A DNA stretch of 10,259 nucleotides. It comes from Geosiphon pyriformis uo1 (Eukaryota > Fungi > Glomeromycota). A model generated the notes under the pieces. It saw only the letters and a program-made list of their open reading frames with translations. It was not told the origin of the DNA and did not search any database. A program made the translations under genes and the position numbers. The DNA lies in the NCBI GenBank assembly GCA_016748015.1, contig JAAOMT010000401.1:1-10259 (forward strand), given 5' to 3'. How positions within the stretch are numbered: the first letter of the stretch is position 1; the number at the start of each line of letters is the position of its first letter. Shown one piece after another: positions 1 through 10,259 of this stretch.

Positions 1-49
1 GGGGGGGGGTAAATTCCCAATTAGAGTATTGGACATCCGATGTACACCC

Positions 50-2562
50 GATTGGACCTTCCAGAGCTGGTAGTAGTTGTGTATGTTCAAGTCAATAGGG
101 TCCTGGGGGGCATAGTACCTACTTTTACGTGGTACAATGGCACTCCATAATGGTCCTACTGTCCTTACCATTATACCCGGTAAGCATAGAAAGAATGTTA
201 CTATCCTTTATAGGGTAGATTGGCGGACAGTCTAGGGGGCTCTCCCGACCAGAATTCTGATTTTAGAATGGACTTATCCTACTCTCAGCCTCCCTGGACT
301 GATAAGTAGAGCCATTATGATCTATTCAAGGTTGGTTATAGGGTACAGAGGCCATCTTAATAGCTCCCAACAGCTAGGACGACAAACTCCTTAGTAAGGA
401 GCGTCTCCATGAATGTACTGGGTTCTATGCTTATTCCTTGTAGGCAACCATAATGGTTACGAACAAAGGTTACTGGATTGGTTGGGGGTGGGGAGGTCTG
501 GTTGGAAGAATTATGGGTAACCTCTAGATCTATCTTAGCAAAATACCCAACATTCTATTTACTGCCTGGCTAGTGGAATTCACTAGGTCAGACACCAAAT
601 TCCACAACCCCAAAAGTGGGATTATGGCTATGATATAGCTACAAGGTTCAGTACAAATCGTACCTAAGTACCTTACTAACCATTTGGTACCCGATAGGTA
701 GAGTGCCACACTGCCCTTAAAATCAAATTATGGGCAAGCAGGCTATCACCAAGTACCCTCAGGCAGTTTGGTACTGCAGATGGGGGCAAACGGGGACAGG
801 GGTGGGAGGCTATAGCCACTACCAGCTTTATCTCCCGAATTGGGATGGGAGGCTAGCTAGGGCCCCCATGGGTATGGGGCTATCGGTAGTCAATAACACC
901 AAGGATTGGTGAGTGCTTAGAGGGCCCGATACGAGTAGGAAGTGTTCCCTACTTGCAGATCGCCAGAAGCCCCCCTTTTTCCCGCATACACTACTGTATG
1001 TACCACATGAACCCTAAGCCCTATGGAGGACTCAGTGTACCTATGGTAGGGTCAGCGATACCTAAAGGTCATACCCCCATTGGCCAAGGGATCTACCTAC
1101 GTATTAACTACTGCAGTCCATCAAAAGGGACCTAAGGGGTGACAGCCTTTGTTTGTTTATGACTACCCCAGTTCAGGATTAAAGGGGGTTTATGAGGTTG
1201 CTTCCCTAAAGCATGGTCCCATAGTCTCTGTTCCACTGCTCTTAGGATACCCACATTCAATGGGAATGCCTAAGTATAGTTCCTACGTTGGTAGCAGTGT
1301 GCATAGCTATAGACCGGTCTTATGGGTACCTGTACCATACGGACGTATGGTAGGTCCCCCATCACTGTAGGACTATCTCAAGCCTCCCATTATGGGGAGA
1401 GCAGATTGGTATGTTTATACCGAGATAGTAAACACTGCCATTGATGGGAAGTATTACAGTAGGTGGATAGCCTACCAGCCTGTCTATCTCCCCAGGTACG
1501 CCTAAACATCCATTTCTGGACGAATAGAGTACTTGGTAAGATTCTAACCGCTCACCCATAAGGATGGAACGGTTGAGCAGAGGTCCATAGGTGTAATACC
1601 CTATTGGCCTTTGCTTCATAGGACAGGGGACATGTGTTACCTGTGGGATAGGATACCCTTCGATGTCTTCCAGACATCTTAGGGGCTGGAACGGAGACTG
1701 ATACCGGGGACGCAAAGCCTGGGTGGTGGGGGGACCACCGCAGACTCTGAATCCTGCGGGATCCTCCCCATCACAGACTACCTACTTAGATCACTATTGT
1801 TTCTCTCTAGGCCAAGGGAGTATGGTGGCTTAAGTCTATCCTCTTATTGAACAGGGAATCCCTAAAGTGTAGAACTCTAATGGTAAGGTTTACCATATCA
1901 CAGGGTTAGTAGACCAGTAGGTATTAGACATCTCTCCTTCCAAAGGAGGAAGGGATATCTTGTAAGGGGTCAGTAGTGCTAACAGCCTACATGACTATAC
2001 CAATCAATGGTTAGAAGTATGGCACTAGTACCAGTACACCCAATGTGTACCAATCCGTGACATATCCTCCCTTACCATTCAATGGGGTGGAGCGGATGGG
2101 AGGACTGTGTCCTTTATAAACAAGGATTTGCTAGAAACCCTAGCTATGGAGCCAAGGAACTCAACCAACCCCCGTTTAGAGGTCCACCCATAGGGGAGCG
2201 GAGACCTTAGGGATCCCTCCTCCAACCACACTTCCCTTACATTTCTACCCTACTTAATTAACTACTGAGTCCAATAGGAAGGGTTCCTACCCAATCAACT
2301 GTTGGGTCATCTGAGTACTAAAGCAATGATGTAGGCTATTATATTCCTAACAATCAAAGCTGAGTGGGCTACACATACAGTCGGTAATGGATAGTCCAGT
2401 TGATGCCCTACGGCTTATACTAACCTACTCTTAGGCGTATCCCGTACGGATCTACTGGTTATCTTCCCCAATTCCGAATTTGGGCATGTAGAGTACATGA
2501 ATCAGATACCAAATAGTTGTGTTGGATGGACTCAATTCCTGGATAATCACGATTGTGATTAG
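50..2562 (+). ncRNA. Large structured non-coding RNA module, paralog A (unknown family; true ends undetermined)
   Basis: Colinear anchors shared with B and C: atgttcaagtc(g)aataggg 83, gcttattccttg 429, gggcaaacg 784, atgaaccc 1007, ttacagtaggtggatagcctaccagcctgtc 1454-1484, ctacctact 1778, tggcttaagt 1826. Covarying stems at 934-953, 984-1001, 1333-1352 and 1880-1896. Confidence 0.75.
1454..1484 (+). repeat. 31-nt block invariant in all three paralogs (also 3906-3936, 6309-6339, 8759-8789)
   Basis: ttacagtaggtggatagcctaccagcctgtc was read directly at each site. Identity extends to 41 nt between A (1446-1486) and C (6301-6341). Confidence 0.95.
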
Positions 2563-4967
2563 AGTTGGATCTACCTAGGGAGTTCAATAGAGTTAGATGT
2601 TCAAGTCGAATAGGGTCCTGGGTACGGGATCGTGGGGATCTGTACGGAATCCAGAAGGGTCATACCGTACTAATAATCAGATTGGTATGGAAAGAATGGT
2701 ATTGGTTGGGCTATGTACTTCCAGCAAGGATTCTCCCGACCATAGTACTTGAGTCACGTATGGACACCGATGTATTGATAACCCTTTACCAACAATCATG
2801 CCCACATATGACTATTTAAAGGTTGGCATCGGGACGTAGGCCCCCCACGGCATTGTGCGTCAAGCACTCTGGACCGATGGGTTAGGATAGCCGATCTAAC
2901 TCAAAGCTTATTCCTTGGTATAAACAGTGTGGTTCTAACGAAGGTAGGGGGGGGGCTTTGGTACCTTGGTACGTCTGGTCTGAGAGTACTTTGGATAGCC
3001 CTGGTTGGATCCTACATAGTACCCCATTCTATCTCCTTATTGCTAGTAACGTCATCTAGATGACCTATATCCCTTATCTCCATACCCCCTTATTTAGGGG
3101 ATTTGGGATAGGATTCTAGCTACCAATAAAGGACTTAAATCGGACATCAATTCCTGTCTAACCAACAGGGATCCGATATGGTAGAGTGTAAAGCTCCTTG
3201 AGAAAGGAGAAGACTATCGCCCGCATCCCCTCAGGTGGATTGGTACCACCGAGTGGGCAAACGGGGTGAAGGGTGGGAGGCTAGGGCCACTATCAGGCCC
3301 ATACCTGGTAGGCAACTACACCAAGAGTTGGTAAGTTGTCCTAGAGCATATGGATGGTGCGCAATGGTTCGCGCACTACAGCCATGCTCCAAGCCCCCCT
3401 CCACACCGCAGATCCCTACTGGGATCTGTACCATATGAACCCCTAAACCGGAGTAACTTTATGTGTACTCTAGGTAGGTAAGCGGTACCGATGTCTGTCT
3501 CCACCATAGGCCAAGAGATCCAGCACCTGGTAACCATCTATGGATCCATTTGTGGACCTAAGGTGGTAATGATTAGAAGTGGTAGGTGTAAATTCCTACC
3601 AACCCCCCTAATTGAACCAGGGAGACTGTATTAGAGCCTATGGTCCCTTAGCTTATCATCCCACTGCACTTAGGTTACCCACACTCAATGGGGACCACCT
3701 GAGATTGGTTACTTTAGTAACTGGTAGTGAAATAAGCTTCTCACAGGTCTTACAAGTCCCTGTCCTGCACGGACAAGCAGGAGGTCCTTCACTACTGTGG
3801 ATCTTTCATCTGGGGGGGGGGTTTTGTACTCCCCCATATGACACCCTTCACTTCCCCATCGGGGAGGTAAAGAGGATCCGACAATACCTATTCTCATAGG
3901 ATGTCTTACAGTAGGTGGATAGCCTACCAGCCTGTCCTACTAATCGACTCTCCCCGAGTATAGTTAGATACCTTATTACCCGATTCTTTGGGATAATAGG
4001 TTGGAGTATCCCCCCTTTATGGGGGGACGCTTGAGGTACAGGGGACTTGTGTTACCGGTTGAACTAAGATACTTCGACAGTTTCAAACTGCCTTAGGGGC
4101 TGTAACTGGGATCGTGACCTCTTTTCGAACGCAAAGTAAAGTAGAGATGCACCTCTCCAGGACCTTACTCAGATAGAGGACCGAGAGCTACATACTACCT
4201 ACTAAGTCACTGTTGTTTTACCATGGCCAAAGGGAGTGTGGTTGGCTTAAGTCCTATACCTGTTGTCCATCCCCCCAATACCATAGGATAGGGTCAGAAC
4301 GGCTATGTTAGCCGTGTACAGTGCAAAGTAGTAAGAGTATTCATCCGACGCCTCCATGCCCTCCCGTATGGGGAAGACAGGATCTTGGAGTCAATTGAGG
4401 ATTTTACCCCAATCCTTGTTGGCTATCTTAGGAGTAGTAAGGATCATGGGTTTAGCACTAGCACACCCCTATGAGTGTAAAGCTGTTCATCCCCTTCCAC
4501 CCCACTCAATGTGGAGGGGCAGCTGAGTAGTACTCAATTGGTCTACGGACAACTGGACCCTTACGGGTTACCAGTGCAAGGTCCCCGCGGGGTTTTGGGG
4601 ACCATCGTGTGGTAATAGCAGAGGATATCTTACTCCCTATTATGCCATGTCTTACTATCCAAGATGCCTGGTTACCTAATGGATGGTACTCCTACCAAGG
4701 TTATTATAGTTGGTGGTTTGTTATTACGTATCTTATCCCGGTACCTACTCTTACTTATTAGGTAATGGTGATACAGCACATGAACCCTGGAGAAACACCA
4801 GTCATATCAGCTTGCTTCATAGCCCCCTTTTAAAGGAGGGACTAGAATATTTGGACGGAACGTGTAATCATTCCCCCCCCTGAGATAGACGAGTAGTCTG
4901 CTAATATGGGGGTTTGTATGTGATGCAGGCATTGTAATGGTAACCGATTGGCATTTGACTGTACTCT
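2563..4967 (+). ncRNA. Large structured non-coding RNA module, paralog B
   Basis: Same anchors at 2597, 2906, 3255, 3906-3936 and 4195. Covarying stems at 3357-3376, 3408-3429, 3763-3782 and 4299-4315. Confidence 0.75.
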
Positions 4968-7354
4968 GATTGGACCTTACATGGTTGGAGGACGGTTAGG
5001 ATGTTCAAGTCGAATAGGGCCCGACGGCTTTACCTTAACGGTTATGGCACGTCAGATTGGTCCTACTGTTCTCTGCAATCCCCTTGTAGAGTCAGGAAGA
5101 ATGGTTGGTTTAATTGGGGCACATGTACTACTAATGGGTCCTCCCGATCATAACTTTGGATTTTAGAATGGACTTATCCTACTATTGTAACAGTTTACTA
5201 ACTAGTAGAGCCATTGGATCTATTAAAGGTTTGTGGTGGAGATTCCAGTTGCGAACCCATAGTCTTAATACTCCTCCATAGGAAAGGGAGAGCCCTATGA
5301 GTAATAGGGTCCCTTGGTTCGAGACGGTTACCCATGCTTATTCCTTGGAGGCACCTAATGGTTACGAACGAAGGGGCTCTGAGCTCCAGTAGTGGGGAGG
5401 TTTGGTTTTAGATAGTTATGAGTAACCTCATTAGTACCTACATGGTGTCCAGCAATTCTATCCCAGCCTGCTAGGATAATCAACTAGGTCATACTTCATT
5501 TTCCACTACCCACATTATTTGTGGGATGTGAATAGGATCTAGCTACCAGGTATGGATCAAATCGGACCTCAGTACTTTGCTAACCACTGTACTCCGATAC
5601 GGTAGAGCGTAAAGCTGCTTGTAAGCAGAATACTGTCACCAACGCACCCTCAGGGGGTTTGGTACCACCGAGTGGGCAAACGTAGATTTAGGGGGAGGCT
5701 AGGGCCACTACATCTCACTACCCCATGGGGAGGGGGGGGGGTGGAAGTAAGACTTCCCCATTTAGGGGAGGTCCGGTAGTCAATCACACCAAGGATTGGG
5801 AGGCCACTAGGGCAAGAGTACGGTTGCGCAATGGTTCGCGCACTGCAGACTCGCCACAAGCCCCCTCTCTCTACGCATGGGATACTATCCCATGTACCAC
5901 ATGAACCCGGGCATTTGTAGACCTCAGGTGTACCTATGGTAGGTCAGCGCGGTACTGGGTCCTTCCCAACCATGGCCGAGGGGTCTACACTTGGGATACT
6001 AAGCGCTACGTACCCATTACATGGGTCCAAGGTGGTAATAGGTCCAAGGGTTTAAGTACTCTTGACTATGGTCCCATAGCTTACTATCCCACTGCTTGTA
6101 ATATCCACAGAGAATGTAAACGTCCAAGCGGGTCTCCTTAGTGTAGCAGTGATCTTAGCTATCACGGTCTTATGGGTCCCTGTACCATACGGACGTATGG
6201 TAGGTACCCACTACTGTGGAGCTATCATATGCTACCTCATTGTAAGAGGATAGTAGATTGGTATTTTCATACCATGATAGTGCTCACACTACCCTTTTCA
6301 GGGAAGTATTACAGTAGGTGGATAGCCTACCAGCCTGTCTACCTGTCAATACCCTCCCCGGGTATAACTAGGTACCATAGTACCCGACTTCGGGTACTTA
6401 TCCGTCCCCCAACGGGTGGGGGACTTATGGTGTACAGGGGACTCATGTTACCGGTTGAAGAGGATACCCTTCGACACCTTCCATATGTCTTAGGGGCTAT
6501 AATCGTAGACCTTTTGTAGACGTACAGCCTGAGAAGTATGGTACTTACACAGGACTGCATATCCTGGGGGGTCCACACGACTATAGACTACCTACTATGA
6601 CACTGTTGGTTTTATCCCATTGGCCTGGGAGTGTGGTGGCTTAAGTACTCCAACTTGACTACCAACCCCCATGGCTCTAGGATAGGGTCGGAATGGCTAT
6701 GTTAGCCATGTACATTTACAAGCGGAGCCAGCTATTCATTATACCTTAGAGACCCTAAGAGGAAGGAGAGTATTTTTAGGGTCAGTATGGCCATTCACCT
6801 ACTAGATCTCACTGAGTAGTGTAAGGGTCTTATGCTAGCACTTATCCCAGAAGTGTTAAGCTGTCTTCAACCACCCTACCCATTTAATAGGGGGGGTGGG
6901 CAGCTGAAGAGGCGTAAGATTCCCTATTTATAAGGGACAGTACCTAACAAGGTAATTAGTTGGATTTGTCCACTAATGGAGAAGAGTACCAATTGGACTC
7001 CCTTCCCTGCCACTGCCACTACCTCAGGATACTTTGGTAGAGAACTTGAAGACTAAAACTGTGAATAGCCCTCTAAATATAGTTGTGGGTTTGTTCTTAG
7101 GTTTAGGTAAATATTGGTATCCCTACAAGCTCTTATCATAGATTGGTAATACAGCACAATATCCTTACTGGGAAGTACCAACGGTACCAGTATGCCTAAT
7201 GGAGCCTACTAAATAGGAAGCCCATAGGACGGTGAGGAACGGGTTAGAATCCCAACATCTGGTACGAACCTTGTATATTACTGATATGAGGTTGATCTTT
7301 TAATAGGGGGGGGGTAAATTCCCAATTAGAGTATTGGACATCCGATGTACACCC
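4968..7354 (+). ncRNA. Large structured non-coding RNA module, paralog C
   Basis: Same anchors at 5001, 5336, 5674, 6309-6339 and 6588. Covarying stems at 5825-5842, 5875-5895, 6183-6202 and 6693-6709. Confidence 0.75.
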
Positions 7355-9867
7355 GATTGGACCTTCCAGAGCTGGTAGTAGTTGTGTATGTTCAAGTCAA
7401 TAGGGTCCTGGGGGGCATAGTACCTACTTTTACGTGGTACAATGGCACTCCATAATGGTCCTACTGTCCTTACCATTATACCCGGTAAGCATAGAAAGAA
7501 TGTTACTATCCTTTATAGGGTAGATTGGCGGACAGTCTAGGGGGCTCTCCCGACCAGAATTCTGATTTTAGAATGGACTTATCCTACTCTCAGCCTCCCT
7601 GGACTGATAAGTAGAGCCATTATGATCTATTCAAGGTTGGTTATAGGGTACAGAGGCCATCTTAATAGCTCCCAACAGCTAGGACGACAAACTCCTTAGT
7701 AAGGAGCGTCTCCATGAATGTACTGGGTTCTATGCTTATTCCTTGTAGGCAACCATAATGGTTACGAACAAAGGTTACTGGATTGGTTGGGGGTGGGGAG
7801 GTCTGGTTGGAAGAATTATGGGTAACCTCTAGATCTATCTTAGCAAAATACCCAACATTCTATTTACTGCCTGGCTAGTGGAATTCACTAGGTCAGACAC
7901 CAAATTCCACAACCCCAAAAGTGGGATTATGGCTATGATATAGCTACAAGGTTCAGTACAAATCGTACCTAAGTACCTTACTAACCATTTGGTACCCGAT
8001 AGGTAGAGTGCCACACTGCCCTTAAAATCAAATTATGGGCAAGCAGGCTATCACCAAGTACCCTCAGGCAGTTTGGTACTGCAGATGGGGGCAAACGGGG
8101 ACAGGGGTGGGAGGCTATAGCCACTACCAGCTTTATCTCCCGAATTGGGATGGGAGGCTAGCTAGGGCCCCCATGGGTATGGGGCTATCGGTAGTCAATA
8201 ACACCAAGGATTGGTGAGTGCTTAGAGGGCCCGATACGAGTAGGAAGTGTTCCCTACTTGCAGATCGCCAGAAGCCCCCCTTTTTCCCGCATACACTACT
8301 GTATGTACCACATGAACCCTAAGCCCTATGGAGGACTCAGTGTACCTATGGTAGGGTCAGCGATACCTAAAGGTCATACCCCCATTGGCCAAGGGATCTA
8401 CCTACGTATTAACTACTGCAGTCCATCAAAAGGGACCTAAGGGGTGACAGCCTTTGTTTGTTTATGACTACCCCAGTTCAGGATTAAAGGGGGTTTATGA
8501 GGTTGCTTCCCTAAAGCATGGTCCCATAGTCTCTGTTCCACTGCTCTTAGGATACCCACATTCAATGGGAATGCCTAAGTATAGTTCCTACGTTGGTAGC
8601 AGTGTGCATAGCTATAGACCGGTCTTATGGGTACCTGTACCATACGGACGTATGGTAGGTCCCCCATCACTGTAGGACTATCTCAAGCCTCCCATTATGG
8701 GGAGAGCAGATTGGTATGTTTATACCGAGATAGTAAACACTGCCATTGATGGGAAGTATTACAGTAGGTGGATAGCCTACCAGCCTGTCTATCTCCCCAG
8801 GTACGCCTAAACATCCATTTCTGGACGAATAGAGTACTTGGTAAGATTCTAACCGCTCACCCATAAGGATGGAACGGTTGAGCAGAGGTCCATAGGTGTA
8901 ATACCCTATTGGCCTTTGCTTCATAGGACAGGGGACATGTGTTACCTGTGGGATAGGATACCCTTCGATGTCTTCCAGACATCTTAGGGGCTGGAACGGA
9001 GACTGATACCGGGGACGCAAAGCCTGGGTGGTGGGGGGACCACCGCAGACTCTGAATCCTGCGGGATCCTCCCCATCACAGACTACCTACTTAGATCACT
9101 ATTGTTTCTCTCTAGGCCAAGGGAGTATGGTGGCTTAAGTCTATCCTCTTATTGAACAGGGAATCCCTAAAGTGTAGAACTCTAATGGTAAGGTTTACCA
9201 TATCACAGGGTTAGTAGACCAGTAGGTATTAGACATCTCTCCTTCCAAAGGAGGAAGGGATATCTTGTAAGGGGTCAGTAGTGCTAACAGCCTACATGAC
9301 TATACCAATCAATGGTTAGAAGTATGGCACTAGTACCAGTACACCCAATGTGTACCAATCCGTGACATATCCTCCCTTACCATTCAATGGGGTGGAGCGG
9401 ATGGGAGGACTGTGTCCTTTATAAACAAGGATTTGCTAGAAACCCTAGCTATGGAGCCAAGGAACTCAACCAACCCCCGTTTAGAGGTCCACCCATAGGG
9501 GAGCGGAGACCTTAGGGATCCCTCCTCCAACCACACTTCCCTTACATTTCTACCCTACTTAATTAACTACTGAGTCCAATAGGAAGGGTTCCTACCCAAT
9601 CAACTGTTGGGTCATCTGAGTACTAAAGCAATGATGTAGGCTATTATATTCCTAACAATCAAAGCTGAGTGGGCTACACATACAGTCGGTAATGGATAGT
9701 CCAGTTGATGCCCTACGGCTTATACTAACCTACTCTTAGGCGTATCCCGTACGGATCTACTGGTTATCTTCCCCAATTCCGAATTTGGGCATGTAGAGTA
9801 CATGAATCAGATACCAAATAGTTGTGTTGGATGGACTCAATTCCTGGATAATCACGATTGTGATTAG
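7355..9867 (+). ncRNA. Redundant second read of paralog A
   Basis: Matches 50-2562 at +7305. Confidence 0.72.
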
Positions 9868-10259
9868 AGTTGGATCTACCTAGGGAGTTCAATAGAGTTA
9901 GATGTTCAAGTCGAATAGGGTCCTGGGTACGGGATCGTGGGGATCTGTACGGAATCCAGAAGGGTCATACCGTACTAATAATCAGATTGGTATGGAAAGA
10001 ATGGTATTGGTTGGGCTATGTACTTCCAGCAAGGATTCTCCCGACCATAGTACTTGAGTCACGTATGGACACCGATGTATTGATAACCCTTTACCAACAA
10101 TCATGCCCACATATGACTATTTAAAGGTTGGCATCGGGACGTAGGCCCCCCACGGCATTGTGCGTCAAGCACTCTGGACCGATGGGTTAGGATAGCCGAT
10201 CTAACTCAAAGCTTATTCCTTGGTATAAACAGTGTGGTTCTAACGAAGGTAGGGGGGGG
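9868..10259 (+). ncRNA. Redundant partial read of the 5' part of paralog B (truncated by window end)
   Basis: Matches 2563-2954 at +7305. Confidence 0.7.

Follow-up and report, generated by a model that had tools for sequence, protein, structure and literature searches.

Position-conserved local stem-loops with compensated stems in three diverged paralogs of a non-coding 7305-nt repeat

The 10,259-nt contig JAAOMT010000401.1 of Geosiphon pyriformis uo1, analysed here over its whole length (the window), raises the question of what is maintained in a repeated element that shows no coding signal. The original prediction listed five sets of homologous hairpins, located between positions 934 and 2050 and at the matching places of two further paralogs. 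It concluded that selection maintains the structure independently in each copy and that all three copies are probably functional. Our analysis of this element shows that base-pair covariation above background holds, for local stems only.

Self-comparison of the window revealed that positions 1-2954 are identical to positions 7306-10259, with 0 mismatches over 2954 nt at an offset of 7305. With an exact period of 7305 nt, the window spans 1.4 rounds of a sequence that is either a circle or arrayed head to tail; the repeat is probably circular. Because of this period, the region 934-2050 recurs identically at 8239-9355. One period comprises three colinear paralogs of ~ 2.4 kb, here named A, B and C. 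Their limits and parts, numbered along the plus strand, are as follows.

1-7305: full period of the element, defined by the exact repeat at offset 7305
83-2596: paralog A, 2514 nt, bounded by the invariant block that opens each unit (from the alignment, block positions and windowed consensus folding)
2597-5000: paralog B, 2404 nt, 52% identical to A and 59% to C
5001-7387: paralog C, 2387 nt, 57% identical to A
~ 83-2100: conserved, hairpin-rich part of unit A (from the alignment and windowed consensus folding)
2100-2596: hypervariable tail of unit A, barely alignable, with consensus folding near zero
~ 4530-5000 and ~ 6900-7387: hypervariable tails of B and C, ~ 0.5 kb each, barely alignable, with consensus folding of about zero
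1454-1484 (A), 3906-3936 (B), 6309-6339 (C): longest invariant block, 31 nt, which includes an invariant 5-bp hairpin

Each pair of paralogs is separated by 58-67 insertions and deletions (indels) with a long-tailed length distribution, and the rates vary strongly from site to site. Where 44-49% of the surrounding positions are mismatched, A, B and C still share 32 invariant blocks, each 6 nt or longer, and these alternate with variable hairpins in the conserved ~ 2 kb of each unit. The most likely explanation is that the 7305-nt element, which lacks open reading frames (ORFs) above chance, arose by old triplication of a ~ 2.4-kb non-coding unit. The alignment-based tests use a MAFFT alignment of the three units, which all come from one molecule. 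In variable stretches this alignment is not dependable, and long-range covariation is harder to detect as a result.

All 15 hairpins of the five sets were confirmed. The fully written hairpins of sets 1-4 matched the window letter for letter (12/12), with every stem position paired; the sole wobble in these sets was the outermost pair of set 2, a G-T in A, B and C alike. For set 5, too, the arms were found at the predicted positions.

934-953 (A), 3357-3376 (B), 5825-5842 (C): set 1, 6 bp and an 8-nt loop in A; the stem is fully replaced between A and B/C and the loop is nearly kept
984-1001 (A), 3408-3429 (B), 5875-5895 (C): set 2, 6 bp plus the outer G-T in A, 8 bp in B and 8 bp in C; three different stems
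1333-1352 (A), 6183-6202 (C), 3763-3782 (B): set 3, 8 bp and a 4-nt loop in A, identical in C, and a different 6-bp stem in B; the loop core is conserved
1880-1896 (A), 4299-4315 (B), 6693-6709 (C): set 4, 7 bp and a 3-nt loop in A; three base pairs are compensated in two steps
2034-2050 (A), 4463-4478 (B), 6838-6856 (C): set 5, 6 bp in A, only 4 bp in B, and 5 bp plus a G-T in C; marginal when taken alone

Thus, the claim of five homologous sets was borne out, with stems that are perfect and rebuilt in sequence in sets 1-4. On the minus strand, the set 1 stem lengthens by a wobble and an A-U pair, which close a 4-nt loop.

The strict test counted a stem only if all of its pairs, 5 or more, were of the Watson-Crick type, its loop measured 3-10 nt, and its centre lay within 3 alignment columns in all three copies. 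It returned 5 triplets, namely sets 1-4, with two or more double substitutions apiece, and the invariant hairpin at 1459-1475. The 4 compensated triplets compare with a mean of 0.20 in register-shift controls (maximum 3 in 500), and for stems of at least 6 bp the 3 triplets observed compare with 0.004. The original prediction had proposed shuffled alignments as a check, and these do not give as many compensated stems: column-shuffled alignments held 0.07-0.11 compensated triplets, and 0/900 reached 4. Such shuffles keep gaps, conservation classes and local composition but not dinucleotide content, which the register-shift and dinucleotide-shuffle controls do keep. The relaxed test, which accepted a stem of 4 bp in one copy if the other two had 5 bp or more and asked for two or more double changes, was the only one passed by set 5. 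It yielded 13 triplets, compared with 2.2 ± 1.5 in the shift controls (maximum 7 in 200).

Further measures pointed the same way. Watson-Crick hairpins of at least 6 bp numbered 39, versus 15.9 ± 3.8 in dinucleotide-preserving shuffles. Against shuffles of the same type, single-sequence folding in 25 windows gave a mean z of -1.6 for the plus strand and -1.9 for the minus strand. The three-way consensus folding energy was -340.6, versus -213.8 ± 7.8 in column shuffles, and in the full consensus fold 59 pairs spanning fewer than 40 columns were changed on both sides, versus 30.8 ± 4.0 in shuffles. Within the domain 880-1110, which holds sets 1 and 2, 21 of 60 pairs were changed on both sides (9.3 ± 2.2 in shuffles, 0/500 of which were as high; 2-7 in slid controls). 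Co-located hairpins also exceeded the controls for every pair of copies, with 8 (A-B), 15 (A-C) and 12 (B-C) versus 2.4-3.3. All three copies are thus involved in the pattern; the predicted word "independently" is nevertheless overstated for set 1, in which B and C share one stem, and for set 3, in which the identity of A and C leaves a single A/C-versus-B contrast within a tract of unusual A/C similarity. The features that these tests added are given below.

387-2085 (A coordinates): span of all 13 relaxed compensated triplets
387-401, 609-620, 891-908, 1595-1605, 1662-1678, 1722-1739, 1934-1948 and 2075-2085 (A): further compensated triplets beyond sets 1-5
1459-1475 (A), 3911-3927 (B), 6314-6330 (C): invariant 5-bp hairpin inside the 31-nt block
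668-690 (A) and homologs: additional hairpin with an invariant 7-nt loop block

Our preferred interpretation, which we hold with no more than even confidence, is that purifying selection acts on how a single-stranded form of each unit folds locally, with all three units still constrained. We infer selection as the cause, RNA as the folding molecule, and the roles of the modules. The single-stranded form would most probably be a transcript, or otherwise a single-stranded replication intermediate. The stem-loops would act as local modules that display conserved loops and flanks, or that serve for recognition or stability; they would stay in place while their stem sequences were free to change. 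That all three copies are functional, as originally proposed, is plausible, and the invariant blocks support it better than the hairpins do: no copy looks decayed, because all three keep the same ~ 30 blocks.

Several observations weigh against this interpretation. The hairpin density in the unconserved tail of A is about equal to that in the core, which suggests a general propensity of the sequence. With three sequences from one molecule, the covariation power is small and gene conversion is possible; A and C are 78-84% identical at ~ 1315-1490, versus 57% overall. The stems are near-perfect, loops measure 3-5 nt in 28 of the 39 stems of at least 6 bp (loops of up to 10 nt allowed), and no classic stable RNA tetraloop of the GNRA or UNCG type occurs among these hairpins, so that they look more like DNA palindromes than typical RNA helices. 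Moreover, long-range pairs changed on both sides were at control level (39 versus 33.8 ± 4.9), and in a strict column-wise scan for long-range covarying helices the meaningless parallel orientation did as well as the antiparallel one (e.g. 38 versus 37). We observed position-conserved local stem-loops; a global fold was not demonstrated, because long-range compensated pairs were not in excess.

The question of which strand folds adds to these difficulties, since four approaches to it disagree. Over the whole alignment, both strands reach an equal consensus energy (-340.6 and -343.5), and the windowed scores are similar. The domain 880-1110 favours the minus strand, where 60 pairs form, 93% of cells are paired and 21 pairs have both sides changed, versus 39 pairs, 86% and 11 on the plus strand. 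The sequence-wide scan for interior mismatches in local stems favours plus-strand wobble, with 10 G-T versus 2 A-C (2.1 expected of each). Finally, the wobble-type extensions of the 15 conserved hairpins are split into 7 G-T and 7 A-C, and because of this equality no transcribed strand can be named. We must also note that, by window, consensus folding favoured the minus strand in several core windows (839-1860) and the plus strand towards the unit ends (2207-2760, 301-500). Transcripts that run in opposite directions could lie behind this switch, as could noise.

Two rival explanations come next in weight. Intrastrand template switching during replication, or quasipalindrome correction, copies a change in one arm to the other arm; the mechanism keeps stems perfect and mimics compensation with no selection for a folded product. 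Neutral upkeep of palindromes of this kind is the main rival and a serious one, although clearly less probable than selection, and it would make the element a non-coding repeat of a satellite-like, organellar or plasmid-like type. The strictly local compensation, the perfect Watson-Crick stems with minimal loops (3-5 nt in 28/39), the equal hairpin density in the hypervariable tail and the equal folding of both strands all agree with it, as do the balanced G-T and A-C extensions, expected from transitions without strand preference. Purely mutational upkeep is harder to reconcile with loops and flanks that are conserved at ~ 50% divergence while the stems change, as in set 1, set 3 and the hairpin at 668-690, or with set 2 stems of 6, 8 and 8 bp. 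The invariant blocks of up to 31 nt indicate that purifying selection or repeated conversion acts anyway, and the excess of interior G-T over A-C (10 versus 2) hints at a single-strand constraint. We favour selection over pure mutation because loops and flanks persist through the turnover of stems, because stem lengths differ between copies, and because the invariant blocks are strongly conserved. In consequence, the predicted maintenance by selection stands in part: compensated stems are far beyond chance and more numerous than originally listed, and selection is not separated from template switching. The other rival, improbable in our view, holds that each unit encodes a single large RNA (~ 2 kb) with a global fold, like a ribozyme or a ribonucleoprotein scaffold, in which the blocks form long-range helices and a core and the hairpins are peripheral. 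Among the invariant blocks, 24 reverse-complement 5-mer matches were found, versus 11-14 for direct, reverse or complement matches (6-mers, 5 versus 0-2). Ten long-range Watson-Crick stems (6 bp or more) occupy matching positions in A, B and C, versus 0.04 in shift controls, 182 long-range pairs are kept in all three copies, versus 132.7 ± 10.4, and two long-range helices carry a true double change (635-639/809-813 and 312-319/449-456). These signals speak for a global fold, but long-range covariation stayed at control level, many block-to-block pairings are mutually exclusive, invariant partners give no covariation test, and the small self-complementary vocabulary of the sequence inflates the matches. 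Nor was any Rfam match found, even at E up to 10.

The remaining rivals would make the hairpins incidental or the sequence itself unnatural. That the units are degenerate copies of a protein-coding gene or a transposon, for instance after repeat-induced point mutation, is hardly credible. Both indices of repeat-induced point mutation are formally positive (TpA/ApT 1.31; (CpA+TpG)/(ApC+GpT) 0.91) and the sequence is rich in stop codons. Against this, the longest open frame, 139 amino acids, is about that expected by chance under eight stop sets, and no long ORF appeared under any of the 24 base relabellings, with and without reversal. Mismatches between the paralogs show no period of 3, only 6-11 of the 58-67 indels per pair are multiples of three, and no open frame is common to the copies (frames compared by eye). 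Pfam searches with 7 ORFs and 98 stop-to-stop pieces of at least 38 amino acids returned nothing better than E = 0.013. We rejected a coding reading on these grounds (no ORF above chance, no period of 3, indels out of phase, no Pfam match). The transition-to-transversion ratio is ~ 0.8, near saturation, and repeat-induced point mutation was rejected as the main process since transitions do not dominate. A non-natural sequence, i.e. an assembly or amplification artefact or a construct, is very unlikely, though less so than degenerate coding copies. Such an origin would fit the very unusual dinucleotide usage, the location of both window ends within G-runs, and the lack of a relative, or of the contig itself, in any collection searched. 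The divergence nevertheless looks natural, with the transition-to-transversion ratio just given, long-tailed indels, rate variation among sites and the local A/C tract, and the homology is colinear through the internal G-runs, so that these runs are not chimeric joints.

The searches for relatives covered RNA families, viral, metagenome and prokaryotic contigs, plasmids, phages, proteins and the literature. Rfam 15 gave 0 matches at the gathering score, for the whole period and per unit; at E up to 5-10, the only matches were chance-level ones to whalefall-1 (17.8 bits, cut-off 37) and mir-6012 (19.4 bits, cut-off 59). No transfer RNA or transfer-messenger RNA was detected in the window, and sigma-70 promoter-like and intrinsic-terminator-like sites were at or below shuffle level. 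Exact or degenerate patterns of invariant blocks were absent from viral (5 patterns), metagenome (2) and prokaryotic genome contigs (2). A blastn search against plasmids and phages found no relatives; eukaryotic genomes were not among the collections searched. Exact look-up of seven spurious ORFs, an encoding-contig look-up of one and a word-index protein search of one yielded nothing, and the invariant blocks had no match in the full text of papers.

Several further observations concern the sequence of the element. Dinucleotide usage is odd over 1-7305 (CG 0.39, GC 0.58, TA 1.34, CC/GG 1.5, AA/TT 0.76-0.86), AAAA occurs at 0.15 times and GTAC at 2.4 times the expected frequency, and the self-complementary vocabulary is small (GGTA/TACC, TAGG/CCTA, GGTACC). 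To our knowledge, no genome signature matches this base composition. Both window ends lie inside G-runs (1-9 and 10252-10259), which may be the reason for the contig breaks there. Runs of 9-10 G occur four times per period (2947-2955, 3812-3821, 5732-5741, 7306-7314), on the plus strand only and never in unit A. They are far above chance and at non-homologous positions, and the sole comparable C-run is a C8 at 4873-4880. A plus-strand motif of the G-quadruplex type, with four tracts of at least three G, lies in a conserved block at 784-806 (A) and 3255-3277 (B); C is without the fourth-tract arrangement.

The units themselves also differ in local ways. The A/C similarity tract (1315-1490 / 6165-6345) includes hairpin set 3 and the 31-nt invariant block; identity in it rises to 96-98% over two stretches of 44-45 nt, compared with 57% for A and C overall, which suggests gene conversion or a locally stronger constraint. 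The 31-nt block is complementary to at least 5 other invariant blocks (near 807, 1044, 1364, 1627 and 1786 in A), and these pairings overlap and are in part mutually exclusive. A role of the block as a hub or in alternative pairing is conceivable; all its partners are invariant and hence give no covariation signal. Copy-specific indels of 40-80 nt interrupt the conserved part at 1510-1590, at 839-883 with 5729-5774, and at 1160-1200 with ~ 3590-3630. They comprise one A-only segment, one segment absent in B and one absent in C, and none of these segments gave a coding or Rfam signal. Copy A alone has an imperfect small tandem duplication at 1020-1064 (period 20, 2.2 copies, 80% matches). We looked for sub-periodicity within the unit and found none.

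If the stems are kept by selection, the element would represent an undescribed family of structure-dependent non-coding units. Since the element carries nothing else, its function would have to lie in the folded nucleic acid, and the three ~ 50% diverged paralogs on one molecule would form a built-in comparative data set for the fold. If template switching keeps them, the element would instead be a clean natural case of seeming compensation without selection, and a caution for RNA discovery based on covariation. A more far-reaching and rather doubtful proposal, to which we give about the same weight as to the globally folded RNA, is that the element is a complete, ORF-less, 7.3-kb circular replicon. 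It would consist of three anciently diverged, structure-constrained RNA units, all of them needed, and would rely on host or helper enzymes; the units might form a hetero-oligomeric RNA assembly or serve as sub-functionalised cis-elements. Neither in size nor in architecture would such a replicon come near viroids, satellites or the large non-coding RNAs known so far.

The element is closest to a structure-dominated non-coding element, yet it lacks the membership features tested for each candidate group. It resembles viroids and viroid-like circular or satellite RNAs in being ORF-less and apparently circular, in keeping structure by compensation and in having a folding signal in both polarities. 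In contrast to these RNAs of ~ 0.25-1.7 kb, it measures 7.3 kb, is built of three diverged internal paralogs, and is known here as a sequence that may be RNA or DNA. It also has no rod-like genome-wide fold, as its longest inverted repeats (17-29 nt, 70-90% complementary) are scattered and without two-arm symmetry, and searches of both strands at E up to 5-10 revealed no self-cleaving ribozyme (hammerhead, hairpin, hepatitis delta virus-like or twister). Rep-dependent single-stranded DNA circles (CRESS viruses and satellites) are unlike the element, in which no ORF above chance and no Pfam match points to a Rep gene and no origin motif is apical. An 8-mer resembling the origin nonanucleotide does occur at the edge of the invariant block at 1450-1457 (A) and 6305-6312 (C); it is changed in B, is not at a loop apex, and is probably due to chance (~ 0.2 expected per period).

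Kinetoplast minicircles are likewise ORF-less circles of internally repeated units with conserved blocks and hypervariable stretches. The element differs from them in having far longer units and a conserved part of 2 kb, versus ~ 0.1 kb, in having no A-tracts and in not being AT-rich. Their universal 12-mer (conserved sequence block 3, CSB-3) is not present beyond chance, with 3 matches at 2 mismatches versus 2.3 expected, none of them within an invariant block. Extrachromosomal ribosomal DNA circles of protists are also small, protein-less circular DNAs, with structured RNA genes and spacers, whereas the element has no similarity to any ribosomal RNA model even at permissive thresholds.

Template-switch hairpins and palindrome-rich organellar non-coding DNA have short perfect stems, minimal loops, seeming compensation and no strand preference. 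The stem anatomy of the element is alike; its hairpins, however, are unique in sequence and stand at homologous positions of the paralogs with conserved loops and flanks. The large bacterial non-coding RNAs (GOLLD, ROOL, OLE, HEARO) share with the element invariant blocks between sequence-variable helices, a lack of coding and the possibility of several copies per genome. They differ from it in that the element has no Rfam match, has units of ~ 2 kb and no flanking protein genes, as the three units fill the whole period, and shows covariation in local stems only. Position-conserved, covarying stem-loops in a non-coding unit are of a known kind, and what is new is the overall architecture of the element, for which no counterpart has been described.

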